Source of the DNA: Phallusia mammillata
Lineage: Eukaryota
Assembly (NCBI GenBank): GCA_965637545.1
Contig: OZ281494.1
Location: 28,644,001-28,708,000 of the forward strand
DNA length: 64,000 nucleotides
Reading direction: 5' to 3'
Shown: positions 55,214 to 62,995 of the stretch, one piece after another
Position numbering within the stretch: the stretch's first letter is position 1
How the letters are laid out: each line of letters opens with the position of its first letter
Position numbers and translations under genes: made by a program
Notes under the pieces: model-generated
Told to the model about the DNA's origin: nothing
Database searches by the model: none
What the model saw: only the letters and a program-made list of their open reading frames with translations

Positions 55214-56290
55214 GTATAAACCAAAAAATCAAACTTTTGTCCGACATAATAAGAAAACAACATTAACTAAACCTGTAAAAACAGCCTTCATCGGTCTGCC
55301 GTGGCTTATCACCATGACGCTTACACCTCTCCCTCCTTGGGACGTTCCATGATCATGAATTGCAACATAATTCTTCCATATTTGTCTTGAGTTTATTTCG
55401 CTTGTTTATTTTACAGTACTGCAATGGAAACAACTATTTGCTGAAACATTTGACAACAATGATAGCATTTGGTGCGTTAGCTTAAAATGTGTCACCCGGA
55501 ATATCATGATAATGTTGAACAGATTGATAGCAAATGTATCCAAGACAGTTTTCAATTTTATTTACCCCTTTAACACACCTGTAGGTTTTAAATTTAAAGC
55601 ACAACCTGAAGGTGGTATACTTTAAGCAAAAAAACTGACATACCGTGGGACACAAAAAGCATGGCACCAGATTTAGAGTGTGAGATAGTATTAATTCCTC
55701 CCTTCAATGTTTTTTCTGGTTCAACCCTGCATGTTGTCAAAGCAAGCCAACATGCAATAAAGCAAGAGTATTATCATACGAGGTTTTCTGTAAGAAATAA
55801 CAAACAAATATATTGAAACACTAGTTTCATATGACAACTAGAATTGGCAGCTGAATGTCAAACAAGATTAAAACACAGGAAAATGTAAACTTCAGCCTAA
55901 CATGGTCAACATGGTAGCAAAAGGGTGATTAAACACAATTGTAAATGTTACTTTTAGATTGTGACAGTATGCCTCACTGACTTGTGACACTTTTACTGCA
56001 ACTTGTTGACATTAAAGTGTGTAGTTTACTTAGTTTGTACTTACCAAAAGTTTGGTCACCACAGTTAGGCTTTTAATTTACACATAATATTTGGGTCAAC
56101 ACAAGAACTAAATTTTAAAGCTATCAATTCCCCACAAAAAGCTAAAATAATCACCATTACAATTACAAAAAGCACTATCAGAAAAGTTGGACTTTTACCA
56201 TCACACACACACAACCTTAGTGTTCCCACCTAAACAAACAATTAAACAAAATACAACAGCATTACACTGGCAACAGTCTATGAACTAGAC

Positions 56291-56578
56291 CAGTGGTTCT
56301 CAACCTGGGAAACACCCACTAAAAATCAGTGAGTCATTTTGTTTTATAATGTGCAGAATTGAGAGTGTGCTATCCATATTGAGGTTTGTCAGCATCACAG
56401 TTTGTTGTTACTCTTTTCGATTTGATTAAAGCCAAAACTAATACCGAATTTCAACACAAGTTTGCCATTTACATTTTTCGCAGGAAGCCACAGATCTTAC
56501 ATTGTTATTTAAAGGGGGCCACAAGGCCTAAAATATACTTTTATGGGGGCATGGTCCTTAAAAGGTTGAGAGCCACTG
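56291..56578. mobile_element. hAT MITE
   Basis: CAGTGGTTCTCAACC / GGTTGAGAGCCACTG; TSD AACTAGAC / AACTAAAC (7/8). Confidence 0.85.
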
Positions 56579-57528
56579 AACTAAACAATGAAATTAGCAT
56601 GATTGAAAACTAATCCCTATAAGTTTTGTTTTGTATGAAGTATGACTAAGACAGCAAAGCATTGCAAATAATACACATTTAGTTATTAGGCAGCTTTAGG
56701 TTTACTAGGCAGTTGAATTACAAAGTATTTTTTCACATTCTTGTAAAATGAGGGTAAACTATGGAAGTAGTAAACACATTGCTGATTTAAATTGTCAAAT
56801 TGTTATATTGCAATGATTTTAAACCCTTGTTATCGATTAAACAAATAGTACTTGTAGAATAACAGTCACTGGTTCCGAATTCCAAAGGACATGACATGGA
56901 TTTTCGTTCTGGTTGGCGCCATCTTATGAAAGGTGTGACTACTGTACTAGTGCAAAACAGTTTATGCTACTTGTGGTCAAAGAAGCCAAAAAAGTTAAAG
57001 AACACCCATACCATGCGGTTTACTCATAGCAACACATTACAGTTACCTGCAATGTTTATCAACTTCTTAGTAAATGTGATCTTTTGTCTCGATTTCCAGA
57101 CGGGTTTCCCGCTGCTCGAATACGCAATTGGCAGACAATTTAACCACGTGACTTGATCGGCTAATCGCGTCCGCACCGGCGTGACCAGTGAACCATGTAA
57201 ACAGTTTTTAATATTTATTTAATGAATTTAATGCTATTGTATAACTATTCTGGGCACCAAGGATTTATAAACACCTTACATATATGTTTCTATTTTTATG
57301 TAACAACAAGAAATATACGAAACAAACACAGGGTAGTTGTGCCCAAAAATTATCACAATGTTAGTTAAGCGTGACTGTGCATTAGAGCGTGATTGTTTGT
57401 AAACTTTGCAAACGCGGAAGCTAAATTCTTTTTAAAACTTTTGCACTAATTGCACCTTTCTTTGTTTAATAGGAAAGCTTATTCATTTTTTACTTGATGA
57501 GCAAATTGATGCTTAGAATTCAAAAGTA

Positions 57529-58401
57529 ATGAGGGTTACGGGCTCACCAAACTTATTTTCTACATGTGAAGATACATATTACCGGCGCCTGATTTCAAAA
57601 GAAAACATAATTGCAGGTGCATGCGGAATGATCACATTTCCAGCGACATTGGGCATTTTTCAACACGTGCTTTGGAAGCCTTTGAAAGTTGCAGCACACA
57701 GTAAACTTTCACCAGTTTGTGGCCTTTTGTCCGTTGGAACAAGTGCTCTTTTATCTTGCTTTATGGTTTCCACTGTTCATGATGCATTTCTTGGTGTTTT
57801 TCCTATGGTAAGCTTGACAAATCAGGATGCAGTTACATTCACATTATTGTCACTAACTCAGTATTACATGTTCTCAAAAAGTTTTTCAAGAACTCTTCCA
57901 AGTCATGTTTTAAAACCAGGAGCATTCGCAAACAAGTTTATTGAGCTTGTAGACTATGATGTAAAGGTAACAAAATCTCAGAAATGCCAAATTCAGTACA
58001 TTGGTAGATCGCATGGCTGCCATACATGCGGTAAAATTTATTCACCATTTTATAGTGTGTACAAGATTACTTTGGCAAAATTAAATCCTGAAATGTTTAA
58101 AACAAGAGCTCTGTATTATGCTGATCATTCCCCACCCATGGCACTAGCCTATGCAAAGGGTAAAGGCAAAGCCAAAGGAGTACTTTATCCTCAATGCCAA
58201 TCATGCTCTAACCTTCAGTCTTCATGTGTTCGCACTGTACTTAAATCTACTTTAATAAAACTGCCAGCCCAAGGATTTGTCACACACTTTTTTCGTTTTA
58301 AACTTTGGAAAATATGGCTACCATGGCCACTGATCGTGTCTTCTGATTCCATTCTTCAATTGGGTGCAGATTGTGTGCAATTTGTCATTGACAGGTTATA
58401 G
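57529..58401 (+). CDS. Intronless 290-aa protein: N-terminal hydrophobic helices plus C-terminal Zn-binding His-Me finger (HNH-like) nuclease domain
   Basis: Longest ORF in the ORF track. GC164HTC167G ... AD199H200SPP ... LYPQC223QSC226SNLQ; hydrophobic segments about 27-48, 61-83, 101-115; AATAAA near 58550. Confidence 0.8.
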   Translation: MRVTGSPNLFSTCEDTYYRRLISKENIIAGACGMITFPATLGIFQHVLWKPLKVAAHSKLSPVCGLLSVGTSALLSCFMVSTVHDAFLGVFPMVSLTNQDAVTFTLLSLTQYYMFSKSFSRTLPSHVLKPGAFANKFIELVDYDVKVTKSQKCQIQYIGRSHGCHTCGKIYSPFYSVYKITLAKLNPEMFKTRALYYADHSPPMALAYAKGKGKAKGVLYPQCQSCSNLQSSCVRTVLKSTLIKLPAQGFVTHFFRFKLWKIWLPWPLIVSSDSILQLGADCVQFVIDRL

Positions 58402-58703
58402 AACATTGTCTTTGTTTTATGTGTATGATATTTTATGAATCATGGTAGTGCCTAGTGGGACATATTTCACTGTGCAAATTTATGCATTCCTTTTTTCAAT
58501 CTTTCTTTATGTTCTTTGCAAAGTATAAGAAATATTTATTCAGTGACGAAATAAATATATAACACCTCAATACATTAATTTTTGAAGATAGGATGTGTTC
58601 ACAGTGTTGCAATTGCAAACAAAGTGTATAAAGAATGCAGGTAAAATCTTACATAAGGATGTAGAAATTATATAATGATCAATTGACAAAATGGATAACA
58701 CCA

Positions 58704-61700
58704 CTAAATTGATGCAGGGGTTTGTGCACGGTCAGTTTCGGTGTTACTTGATGTTCCATAAATCAACTCAGATATTTTTGGGCCAGTGCTTTGGATGAAC
58801 TGACTGTAACAAAGTGGTGAACAGGCTTGGAATATGAATGGCATCCGCTTTATGCCCCAGATTTCACTGCATGGACGAATGATTCTTAGTCCAGGTCCAT
58901 ACATCTCCTGACCACAGCAATCACAATATGTGAAACTGGAAGAAGAAAAAAACATTTTTTTATGTTGTGATGTCAGAAATTGTTGACCATAGTAATGTTT
59001 AGACAAGAACTGATTTTTAAACCAACAATAACACTGTTAGAACTCATGGAAAATGTACTGGATTTGTATGAAAATGGAACTACAGTTTAAGTACTCCATT
59101 ATGGTCAAATTTCCTTAACTCCAAAAAGGTAGCTAGATTCGTAGGACAAGCAAAGAGTTTGTTTAGATATTTATTGTCGACTTGCTGAAAAGGAAAATTG
59201 GCCTCTTAAAGTTGTGTGTTAAAACACCTACTTTTGCAGGGTAACAATGACTTTTTCAGGAAATTGTCCATAGTTTTCAGGCACATCTTGAATGTAGTTA
59301 CGTTGAAGTGACAAGCAACACAGATCAGATAGGCGTTGTGGGTCATTCTTGGAATTTTCTCTCCAAAACAGGGGACTCATAAAGTTGTTTCGAAATCTCA
59401 TTCGAAACAGGTTTAATCGCAGAAGACCACATGGTAAACCTGGTAGTTCATTTCCCTCAACATTAAGAAACCTGTGTAAGATGAAGATTGCTTTACATAT
59501 CCCTACCAACATGTTCAACCATTTATATAAACTTTCAATACATTCCCGTTTTGTGCAAAAAAAAATGTGAAAAAAAAACTTGCCTTAAATTTTCCAACTT
59601 TTGAATTTCATTTGGTAAAAATGTCAACTTATTGTAAGACAAATCTAAAAACTCCAAACTCTTCAATGAAAACAACGATATTGGTAAAGCAGATAAACAA
59701 CAGAAGGAGAGGATCAAGGTTCTTAGTCTGTGAAGTCTGGACAAACAAAAAACAATTTCTTTAGTCACTCAAATTAGTTTAAATGCAAAAAGTAGTAGAT
59801 ACCTTTGTAACAAGAACAAACGTTTCAACTTGGACATTCGTTTAAAATATTCATAATTTTAATATTTTTCAAAAAAGATTGATAAATACAAAGTTAACTG
59901 GTCAGAATTAAAACTTTGCTAATAGAATGCATGGAATGTTTAAACTGTATTTCTTGTCTTTAGCTCTGAAAATTAATGACGCAATGTAATTTATTACTAT
60001 ATATCTGTCAACAAAAACACAACGATTAAAAATATTGTACCAACAGTACCTGCTTATGTCAGCTGGAATGTCACGTAGTGGATTGTCTCGTAACTTTAAA
60101 ACATGCAGATCTCTACAGAACAAGATCTCTTGTGGAAAATCCGAAAATTCATTGAAAGACAAATTGAGATAAACCAAAGAGTGTGCGAGGGGATGCAAGT
60201 CTGGGAGACTGGATATAAAGTGAGCCTGTAACACAGAGCATTGTGCATAAATTGTAAAACTACCAGTTGAATTCTTTAAAAAAACAAATTCATGAAGTGT
60301 AGTAGTTATAAATACTGTTTCAATTAAAATAATGTGGTAAAAACCAGGGCTTGAAGTTAGTAAAAATTTTAAAGGCCTTCTGATTGTCAATAGGAAAAGA
60401 AAATGTTCCCTCTCAAACATGCTTGATTTACTGTTATTTTTTGACATGCTGATGGGCATAAAAGTTCATAACATTGGTCTATATTAATAGTGGTAAATAA
60501 AACTGAACAAAAATCATAAATGACTTGTGATTTTTTTAAATTTCTCCCCAGCCCTGGTAAAAACTAGTGATGCACCGAAGTTTTGGTTGGCCAAAACATT
60601 TTGACCGAATAATCTGTTTTCCGATGTTTCAGTTTCGGCCCGAACTTTTTAAAAAATCAGGCCAAAACCAAACTTTTTGATTGCATGGAATTATTACCTA
60701 AATTTTTATTTTCGCCAATGCGAAACATCATAAACTAACTATTTGTTGTATATATAAAATACGAGCCACGCTGTCTGCAAAATTTTACAAGTTTAGTAAA
60801 GCTTCTGCATTGTAAATGTGATTTTGGTTTGTCATAATTGAGTTCACTTGCATCAACAACACAAGGTTCAGCTGAAATCATCTATAAGAACATGATTTTA
60901 GATTTGGCCTCAAGGCCGAATATTCGGTTTCGGCCTGAACCTTTTTAGGCAGGTTCGGTGCATCACTATTAAATGCCACAGACAGTTTAATACTAGTTAA
61001 AATGTAAAATCATACCCACCTTCAAACTTAGAACAAATCCACCTTCCATAAGGCAAATTAGTATTGCTAGTTCTGCTGGAGTTATAATGGAATCTGAGGG
61101 CTCATCTTCGAATGGTGACCCAGAGCGTTTTGCTCCTTGGAAAATTTTCTCTGTTGCTTTTGTGAAAATGCACATTTGTGACTTTACCCCAATTCCTTCA
61201 GAGTCTGAGCATAATTATATATTTTTAAACTGATGTTAAGTTTTGGTATTGTGTAATATCTATTACCTCCCATTTCATGTATTTCATCTAATACGTCTTC
61301 TAGTTGGTCACTGGTTCCAAGACGACTTGGAGAAGTCAAACCGAGCTCCTCCAAACGTTCTTGTATCACTTTCTTCATTTCTAAAACAATATTTTTGTCT
61401 TATTTCACCTACATCCATTATGTCTCAAATAGGCACCCTTTAATAAGTTTTTCAAAAATTGTTTTAGTCTTGTGATATTATTACCTAGGAGCACCTGTCT
61501 CCTTGGGACACGCTTTTGTTTGGGTTCAATTTCAGATTGTTCAGCTAGGTCAACTTTTGAAACTGAAACTGGTCCATCAGAATCTTTTGCTTTGCTTACT
61601 TGCAATAATCTACAAAAGTACAAAACTGTTTCCAACTGATTGATAAAGTATTTTTTGCTAAACTTACTTTGTTAGTTTTACATAGTTTGCTTTGGAGAGT

Positions 61701-62995
61701 ATAGCTTTTCTAATCATGGGTCGTGGTGCAATAGCTTGGTGATTATGCTGCAAAAAATCATCTAGTCTAAAAATGAGGAAAAAAACATTGTAATGTTTTG
61801 ATTTAATCTAAATAAAAAGCAGAATATTTTTTTGCCTGAAATCTGGTTCTTGGTAATACAAAGAATCATCTGGGAGAATATATTCACGCAAAACTTCTGA
61901 TGGACGTTTTGGTTCTCGCACAGGAAAGGGATCAGGCCCTCTTGGTTTGTAAGGCACAATTAAGTTTTTCTTTATTGGCACAGGATCAACTATAATCAAA
62001 TAAGGGCAAATTTGAATGCATCAGTGAAATTGGTTGCTGTTTTTACACAGGTAATGATTAATTTTAATTCCCTGGTCCATTATGAAACTTTCGGCAAAAA
62101 ACAAACACATTTATTGTTTTACCACTGCTGTAAAATCTATCTCAAATATGTATATGCTGTTTGTTTACATATCGTAACATGGTGTTTTTATATTCTATTC
62201 AATATAAAGAATACCAGTAGGGCCAATAAATTAGTGGGTTGGCTGGAAAAACAACACTCAGTTAACAAATCGCAAATACAACGCCAAATGACCTGACTTT
62301 GTATAGAAGCTATCTGACATTTTTTTTAATACATTTAGTGTTAGGAAATGTTTGTCTTGTCTTATTGTTAAAAACTTAACTGTGCAAGAAAAATGCAAAC
62401 TTATTTTTTTTCCAAAGTAAGTAATATGAAAGCCATTTAATTGTTCACTCAATATATTTACTGAAATCATCAGAGTTCATTGGGTAGGTAATCATCTGCT
62501 TGGCTTGATATTTGGGTTGATGATTAGATTTTGCAACTGGTAGGAAGTCTGACTGCATAGTAGGAACTGGTGATTGCATTCCATCTTGCAGTTGCGAGCT
62601 TGGAATCATTTGCAGCTCAGGTGAAGCATCTAACATGAAAATGTATTCGTTAGATGACAAAATGAAATTGTGTACATGGGCAGCAAATTGTCTACAGATA
62701 TACATGTTTCCTGTTACCTGAATTTTGTAAATAAGCATTTTATTCCCAGATAGAAATAGCTTTATACCAAAAAAACAACGTTTTCATCTGAATACATAAA
62801 GTATCTTTAGGCAAAAAATAAAGTATTGTAAAAATTGATCCGAAAGGATTGGTGATACTTGATTTCGAAACATACAAATTTTACATAAAACTTACGCAGC
62901 CTTGAGGAACAATTACTTGCGATGGGGGGCAAAAGTGGTCTGTTTGAAGGTTTGGGTGGTCGCGGGCGTCGAAGTAATACACCTTTAGAAGACAT
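58704..62995 (-). CDS. LRRC63: Leucine-rich repeat-containing protein 63-like
   Basis: N-terminus LLRRPRPPK; ELAILICLMEGGFVLSLK|AHFISSLPDLHPLAHSLVYLNLSFN...LKLRDNPLRDIP; LDLSYNKLTFLPNEIQKL; C-terminal CDCCGQEMYGPGLRIIRPC...CSPLCY. About 10 exons, not all mapped precisely. Confidence 0.85.
60565..60968. mobile_element. hAT-type MITE (TAGTGATG ends) in an LRRC63 intron
   Basis: TAGTGATGCACCGAA / TTCGGTGCATCACTA; TSD not conserved. Confidence 0.75.

Follow-up and report, generated by a model that had tools for sequence, protein, structure and literature searches.

What kind of protein does an intron-free animal gene encode when its product resembles the tip of a bacterial toxin, and does such a gene belong to the animal at all? 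The question is raised by an open reading frame (ORF) in a 64-kb window of the Phallusia mammillata genome (64,000 nucleotides, contig OZ281494.1, positions 28,644,001 to 28,708,000). The longest ORF in this window, it starts at an ATG, runs from 57529 to 58401 on the forward strand and encodes 290 amino acids followed by a stop codon. An original prediction, made from the sequence alone, had described its product as an uncharacterised, possibly bacterially derived nuclease with a membrane anchor. We find that the ORF product very probably belongs to the NGO1392-like (Tox-SuFu-Nuc) HNH/EndoVII clade, as a tunicate protein within its eukaryotic branch, an assignment that rests on its signature, its partners and its phyletic range. 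Family and fold together are assigned with high confidence.

The motifs on which this reading hinges are all present in the DNA and in the family alignment, at the residues where they had been placed: PGAFA (130–134), GCHTCG (163–168), DHSPP (199–203), LYPQ (219–222), CQSC (223–226), S227 and Q230, with C164 encoded by TGC at 58018–58020 and D199-H200 by GAT CAT at 58123–58128. A profile built from four tunicate sequences and searched against 1.84 billion cluster representatives matched 689 of them at E≤1e-3 and 176 at E≤1e-10; the motif set is therefore not due to chance. Nine residues are invariant in 149 aligned members (G163, C164, C167, G168, D199, H200, P202, C223 and C226), eight more are kept in at least 90% of them (P124, S125, G131, G159, H165, P203, P221 and Q230), and the family consensus reads GCHxCG ... 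ADHxPP ... QxFYPQCxxCSxxQG. Loss of the DH pair or of the cysteines in homologues, or a silent gene, had been named in advance as grounds for giving up the idea; the DH and the cysteines are invariant, and the gene is expressed.

Among named relatives, an uncharacterised protein of Ciona intestinalis is the closest, with 44% identity, and tunicate homologues as a group are 44–69% identical to the Phallusia protein. Further named members come from Clavelina, amphioxus, two sea urchins, a sea cucumber, two choanoflagellates, Babesia ovis and a labyrinthulid, and the ESM Atlas contributes clusters from cnidarians and diatoms that agree with them in length and shape (TM-scores 0.62–0.72). Vertebrate sequences were not found among the named members sampled, in a survey that included no search aimed at vertebrates. 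Four sequences in the collection (P0099, P0110, P0136 and P0145) carry two CxxC...DHxPP...CxxC domains in one protein, P0110 being from a Pseudomonadota metagenome-assembled genome (MAG).

Structural models give this sequence family a fold. AlphaFold2 with the family alignment modelled the whole protein at a predicted local distance difference test (pLDDT) score of 92.5 and a predicted template modelling (pTM) score of 0.87, and residues 118–262, modelled as a separate domain, at pLDDT 94.7. Four long helices lead into a strand at 197–201 that ends in the DH pair, a second strand at 217–222 and a helix at 224–239 that begins at the second CxxC, which is the arrangement of a β-β-α finger. Structural matches to the whole model were mostly generic helical ones, only the eighteenth (ZRANB3 HNH, Z 5.0) falling on the nuclease domain, and the domain was therefore folded and searched alone. 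Aligned exhaustively to 48,161 PDB representatives, the domain model reached Z≥2 with 42 chains, the top 16 of which are all HNH domains at Z 2.8–4.7. They include Gme HNH (4h9d, Z 4.7), ZRANB3 HNH (5mkw, Z 4.5), GVE2 HNH (5h0o, Z 4.1), T4 endonuclease VII (1e7d, Z 3.8), McrA (6ghc, Z 3.7) and Cap5 (7rwk, Z 3.6), together with the HNH domains of Cas9, IscB, TagI and Cascade (Z 2.8–3.3). At the level of sequence, the family profile matched 4h9d with E=0.022, both CxxC pairs and the DH lying in register, and the full-length family profile gave no match in the PDB. On the model, the structural matches and the 4h9d profile match, residues ~123–240 (57895–58248, forward strand, as are all features of the gene below) are predicted to fold as a β-β-α finger, in agreement with the His-Me/HNH finger and four-cysteine site proposed originally.

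Within this domain, the first CxxC (C164 and C167, 58018–58029) aligns with the first CxxC of 4h9d; D199-H200 (58123–58128) closes β-strand 1 at the DH of 4h9d; and the second CxxC (C223 and C226), S227 and Q230 lie on the α-helix (58195–58218). Between CxxCG and DH, the trimmed family alignment and the models place an insert of about 28 residues (169–196, 58033–58116) with a helix at 173–185, which the tunicate proteins have and most non-tunicate members lack. Compared with the zinc HNH nucleases 4h9d, 5h0o, 5mkw and 1e7d, the Phallusia protein shares the β-β-α finger, the two CxxC pairs and the DH that ends strand 1, but it has Ser and Gln where those enzymes have Asn or His after the second CxxC, DHxPP rather than DHxxP, and an extra helix (149–162) and the PGAFA segment ahead of the finger.

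Several results pull the other way from the fold assignment. The Z-scores are low, none above 4.7, so the call rests on the specificity of the hit list and not on a single match. Foldseek, suggested from the outset as a check on the HNH fold, did not bear it out: neither the whole model nor the domain model had a PDB match at E≤0.001. The window protein matched no model or sequence in Pfam, NCBIfam, PDB sequences, PHROGs or PADLOC; the Pfam HNH models (PF01844 and its clan relatives) left it unmatched at gathering score, and 141 domain sequences run against Pfam gave one HNH_5 match (E=2.6e-4) and five weak NinG matches. Two positions are also noncanonical for HNH proteins, the Ser after the second CxxC and Gly217 before LYPQC. 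A weak FYVE match of the window protein was set aside as shared Cys spacing and no FYVE domain.

A link to C-termini of bacterial Rhs-type toxins had been proposed originally, and a motif scan with profile scores and RHS carriers now substantiates it. We back-translated the pattern C-H-x-C-G, gap, D-H-x-P-P, gap, P-x-C-x-x-C and scanned one genome per species from 185,579 bacterial and archaeal species, where far fewer than one chance match was estimated; the pattern began at the Cys codon TGC, and copies with TGT there were missed. Of the 119 loci that the scan returned, about 98 belong to this family, and about 18, which encode ordinary small HNH proteins of the DHLVP type, were set aside. 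Several loci of the family occur in complete isolate genomes, such as those of Sorangium, Streptomyces and Promicromonospora, and others in draft isolates such as Paenibacillus and Hyphomonas. Their ORFs range from about 100 to more than 2200 amino acids, with a median of 57 residues between the end of the domain and the stop codon, and the long ones contain RHS_repeat, RHS, DUF6531, SpvB and TcdB_toxin_midN domains. The genes directly downstream encode Imm21 (E 1e-33 to 1e-34), Imm33-like proteins (E 1e-24 to 1e-28), DUF7003 or proteins of about 125 amino acids from a family that has no model. A hidden Markov model (HMM) of the domain built from eukaryotic sequences only scored most bacterial tips at about 75–95 bits (E about 1e-16 to 1e-22 at Z=1.8e9), part of which is built in, since the scan pattern pre-selected about 14 residues; the PGxxA...SIPA...ERxxIN segment, which lies upstream of the pattern and was unselected, aligns as well.

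Two bacterial tips match more than the nuclease. The full-length eukaryotic HMM scored the loci L009 and L035 at 160–169 bits over profile positions 26–240 of 295. In L009, on an 82-kb contig of a Chloroflexota MAG, the match covers residues 1982–2191 of an RHS-repeat ORF of at least 2197 amino acids, and in L035, from a Gammaproteobacteria MAG, it follows the DPSGH end of the Rhs core. An HMM of the N-terminal region only (query residues 20–117) scored the pre-nuclease stretches of these loci at 42.5 and 38.1 bits, and gave no match to their reversed or shuffled controls; the hydrophobic helices were therefore not added in eukaryotes. After the domain, both proteins end in a W- and P-rich tail and are followed by a DUF7003 gene. 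On this evidence, the eukaryotic protein corresponds to the whole toxin tip of one bacterial subtype, with its helices, its nuclease and its Trp-rich tail. The correspondence has its differences: in L009 and L035 the matched region forms the final ~215 residues of Rhs proteins with DUF7003 next to them, and their helices are Gly/Ala-rich, whereas those of eukaryotes are rich in Leu, Phe and Cys. We did not find the helix match to the two Rhs tips stated in PMC3113570 or PMC3482391. The idea that the N-terminal helices are a fused immunity protein was rejected, as the downstream immunity genes encode soluble proteins (Imm21, Imm33-like, DUF7003 or the unmodelled ~125-residue family) and the N-terminal profile matches the pre-nuclease region of the toxin.

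The bacterial neighbourhoods hold two further observations. A downstream protein of about 120–135 amino acids with no Pfam match occurs at L005, L006, L014, L025, L041, L063, L084 and many other loci, and many of its copies combine a PPNAI-FVFDP-type motif in their opening part with VDG-D/E-T later in the sequence; it resembles an immunity family of this toxin clade for which no model exists. The two copies that were scanned, those of L009 and L071, matched DUF7003 (PF22535) at E 2e-29 and 4e-47, and DUF7003-like ORFs lie downstream at L007, L009, L035 and L071, among them the two loci whose tips match the eukaryotic protein in full length. Its position after toxins of this clade suggests that DUF7003 is an immunity protein.

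These results agree in signature, carriers, partners and range with a clade that has already been described. For the NGO1392-like/Tox-SuFu-Nuc clade, Table 2 of PMC3482391 gives the signature CxxC, DH, CxxC, Q and the HNH/EndoVII fold; the same paper reports carriers that include RHS repeats and TcdB/TcaC export routes, the immunity proteins Imm-SuFu, Imm13, Imm21, Imm33 and Imm38, and a eukaryotic range of apicomplexa, choanoflagellida, metazoa, stramenopiles and viridiplantae. The likeness thus takes in the four-part signature, the fold, RHS and TcdB/TcaC-type carriers, Imm21 and Imm33, and the eukaryotic range, and the differences are that the window protein is free-standing at 290 amino acids, with neither carrier nor immunity gene, has the 28-residue insert and has Gly217. 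Against the assignment, the 119 loci recovered include none from Neisseria, the genus of the founding protein NGO1392 (Neisseria gonorrhoeae). A full-text literature search on the clade names returned only PMC3482391. Of the original description as uncharacterised and possibly bacterially derived, the second half gains from the toxin-tip homology and the first has to yield: both the family and its occurrence in animals were published in 2011–2012 (PMC3113570, PMC3482391), and the sea-squirt gene is a new member. Novelty is accordingly lower than had been assumed, the clade and its eukaryotic spread being already in print.

The published accounts also bear on origin. In 2011 the eukaryotic versions were judged too conserved for toxins, with possible recruitment to DNA repair (PMC3113570), and in 2012 the clade was described as having arisen in bacterial toxin systems before transfer to eukaryotes (PMC3482391). 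Our own tree, of 125 columns, unrooted and mostly unresolved, separates a mainly bacterial group (Shimodaira–Hasegawa-like approximate likelihood ratio test (SH-aLRT) 94) from a second group (SH-aLRT 88), in which all named eukaryotes are joined by L035 and two further bacterial rows. L007 and L009 lie near the split, and the nearest relatives of the window protein are tunicate proteins, not bacterial ones. Such a poorly resolved, unrooted tree tells against a firm reading of the donor lineage, of a single eukaryotic clade or of direction, and the last rests instead on architecture and the published argument. We favour an origin in which a complete toxin tip would have passed from bacteria to eukaryotes in an ancient transfer and would now serve as a domesticated cellular nuclease.

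In its present setting, the gene shows none of the surroundings of a polymorphic toxin system. It is a free-standing ORF transcribed alone, has no carrier, and its downstream neighbour is a convergent leucine-rich repeat (LRR) gene and no cognate immunity gene, as had been noted from the sequence. DUF7003 and Imm21 were not found in the tunicate genome, which is weak evidence of absence because the control genomes gave no match either. The gene is single-copy in the genome (C1:28701529-28702398), and its coding sequence (57529–58401) is free of introns, as first described: transcript contigs from four runs in four studies extend over 57413–58407, 57446–58520, 57471–58683 and 57473–58709, none of them jointed. 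The same runs show CT..AC joints in a neighbouring minus-strand gene and therefore contain spliced RNA, from which it follows that the nuclease gene gives an unspliced mRNA of about 1.1–1.3 kb. This transcript, with its 5′ untranslated region (UTR), coding sequence and 3′ UTR, spans approximately 57413–58709; the flank at 57157–57340 is uncovered by transcript contigs. A candidate polyadenylation signal, AATAAA, lies at 58550–58555, where one contig ends at 58520 and others at 58683–58709.

How would such a protein work? On the sequence and the model, the four invariant cysteines would bind a zinc ion with a structural role, like their counterparts in the Gme and GVE2 HNH domains and in T4 endonuclease VII; H200 would be the general base that activates the attacking water, and D199 and Q230 would hold the catalytic divalent metal, as do the corresponding residues of the D148/H149/Q175 site of KpnI. 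KpnI is an active HNH enzyme with Gln as a metal ligand, and it also holds zinc (PMC3834813); it is a sequence-specific restriction enzyme, and the parallel with the window protein is mechanistic only. The Phallusia protein would cut DNA, possibly RNA, non-specifically, and the helices at 26–49 and 60–84 would probably insert in a membrane and so limit where the nuclease acts. In bacteria, the helices of the Rhs tip may carry the nuclease across the target membrane.

Each part of this picture has a rival, and the rivals differ widely in weight. That the assembly picked up the sequence from contaminating bacteria, or that P. mammillata acquired it recently by horizontal transfer, might be suspected from a gene with no intron among intron-rich neighbours and with matches to bacterial toxin tips, but we hold it to be extremely improbable. 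The gene sits 28.7 Mb into a 36.4-Mb scaffold, and its guanine–cytosine content of 0.37 is that of its flanks. The convergent LRR gene next to it (58743–62995, minus strand) is orthologous to the neighbour of the Ciona copy: twelve collinear tblastn matches with 40–78% identity link it to pieces of the Ciona LRR gene, whose exons match it in the same order, and the Ciona orthologue of the nuclease gene (LOC144743288) is itself a single exon followed by that convergent LRR gene. This conserved order shows that the two genes were already neighbours in the ancestor shared with Ciona and have remained so. Orthologues extend across tunicates, amphioxus and echinoderms, with the nearest relatives being tunicate, not bacterial. 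Synteny and phyletic spread lead us to reject contamination and recent transfer. The worry about contamination raised at the start is thereby settled in favour of a host-resident gene, by scaffold, synteny and expression. What does not survive is the use of the missing introns as a sign of recent transfer, since the orthologues of Ciona and amphioxus likewise consist of one exon and synteny is conserved in Ciona. A weightier rival, still unlikely in our view, keeps the HNH fold and the zinc site and drops the cutting, leaving a nucleic-acid- or protein-binding module like the Tox-GHH domain of teneurin. An Asn directly after the second CxxC is metal-binding in HNH enzymes, for example in T4 endonuclease VII. 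In the 4h9d alignment S227 takes the place of this Asn; of the canonical His...Asn...His/Asn triad the protein has H200, lacks the middle Asn and carries S227 at the last position, with Q230 one helical turn beyond. Tunicate proteins have Gly217 where the family has Gln before FYPQC, and eukaryotic Tox-GHH versions lost their catalytic histidines (PMC3482391), so that toxin domains can lose activity after transfer. Yet none of the 149 sequences departs from D199 and H200, and at least 90% of them retain Q230, in bacterial toxins and eukaryotes alike; the Ser and the Gln also occur in bacterial tips paired with immunity genes and are thus no mark of decay; and KpnI is active with a D-H...Q site. 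We found no activity assay in the literature for eukaryotic members or for the bacterial clade, which counts against certainty here, and on the conserved residues we consider it probable, with some reserve, that the protein is an active nuclease.

The closest contest concerns the N-terminal helices. Helix 1 (residues 26–49, 57604–57675) has 24 uncharged residues, a model helix at 24–49, a family mean Kyte–Doolittle value of 1.50 and 2% charged residues; helix 2 (60–84, 57706–57780) has 25 uncharged residues, a model helix at 61–88 and a family mean of 1.45, each mean being taken over 19 residues; both are candidate transmembrane segments. Helix 3 (98–116, 57820–57876, a model helix over the same residues) is more weakly hydrophobic or amphipathic, with a family mean of 1.22 and 10% charged residues. 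Read as a soluble bundle packed on the nuclease, the helices would be a built-in lid or a leftover of the toxin entry region and no membrane anchor, and we give this reading a substantial though lesser share of our belief. It draws on the model, which packs the N-terminal helices on the nuclease domain in one compact body (pTM 0.87) and fits a soluble bundle equally well, a point that weighs against a membrane anchor. It draws also on peak hydropathy, which is borderline at about 1.5–1.6, with 23% of members having no 19-residue window at Kyte–Doolittle ≥1.6, and on the counterpart region of L009 and L035, which is Gly/Ala-rich and not strongly hydrophobic. Set against it, helices 1 and 2 are nearly uncharged across the family (2%), 77% of members have at least one 19-residue window at ≥1.6, and the helices are 24–28 residues long. 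A membrane anchor is plausible from hydropathy, and we lean slightly towards it.

Downstream of the nuclease domain lies the Trp-rich C-terminal tail (residues 253–290, 58285–58398), in which H253, R256, F257, K258, W263, P265, W266 and P267 do not vary among the four tunicate sequences.

The surroundings of the gene offer some further observations. On the upstream side, minus-strand pieces at 55644–55787 and 57047–57138 are joined by one transcript contig across a CT..AC intron, and this exon end, about 275 bp upstream of the start of the nuclease transcript, suggests that the two genes share a divergent promoter. The minus-strand gene upstream of the Ciona orthologue encodes RRM_1 and eIF2A-type propeller domains, and the window gave no match to it. 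On the downstream side, the multi-exon LRR gene, recognised by tblastn, spliced contigs and an LRR_4 match, stands tail-to-tail with the nuclease gene; contigs of the nuclease gene (to 58709) and of the LRR gene (from 58590) overlap by up to ~120 bases at 58590–58709, which may reflect 3′ UTRs that overlap from opposite strands, the contigs carrying no strand information. The amphioxus orthologue (L122 4001–4801) falls within the span of a same-strand Cpn60_TCP1 chaperonin gene and is probably nested in one of its introns. Short, high-depth contig pieces at 56309–56477 and 60557–60968, with abrupt ends and unrelated sequence on either side, look like dispersed repeats and not exons.

Toxin HNH domains fixed in animal genomes have precedents in the CIDE/DFF40 nuclease and the Tox-GHH domain of teneurin (PMC3482391), which belong to other HNH clades and have other architectures; CIDE takes part in apoptosis, and the domain in teneurin has no activity. 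A membrane-inserted DNase kept away from its substrate, then released or exposed in programmed cell death, in defence or in the clearance of organelle or foreign DNA, is a role we can only put forward as quite doubtful; if true, it would be a second, independent case beside the CIDE/DFF40 nuclease. The family itself is widespread in animals, choanoflagellates, apicomplexans, stramenopiles and green algae and keeps a toxin-grade nuclease site, with no Pfam model and no experimental study in the searchable literature. As Ciona is easy to work with by reporter electroporation and CRISPR, its orthologue offers a practical route to the function of a domesticated toxin nuclease in an animal cell. 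And because the hydrophobic region appears to have arrived together with the nuclease and to be no later addition, the question shifts to the task that these pre-nuclease helices, themselves part of the toxin, perform within the very cell in which they are made.

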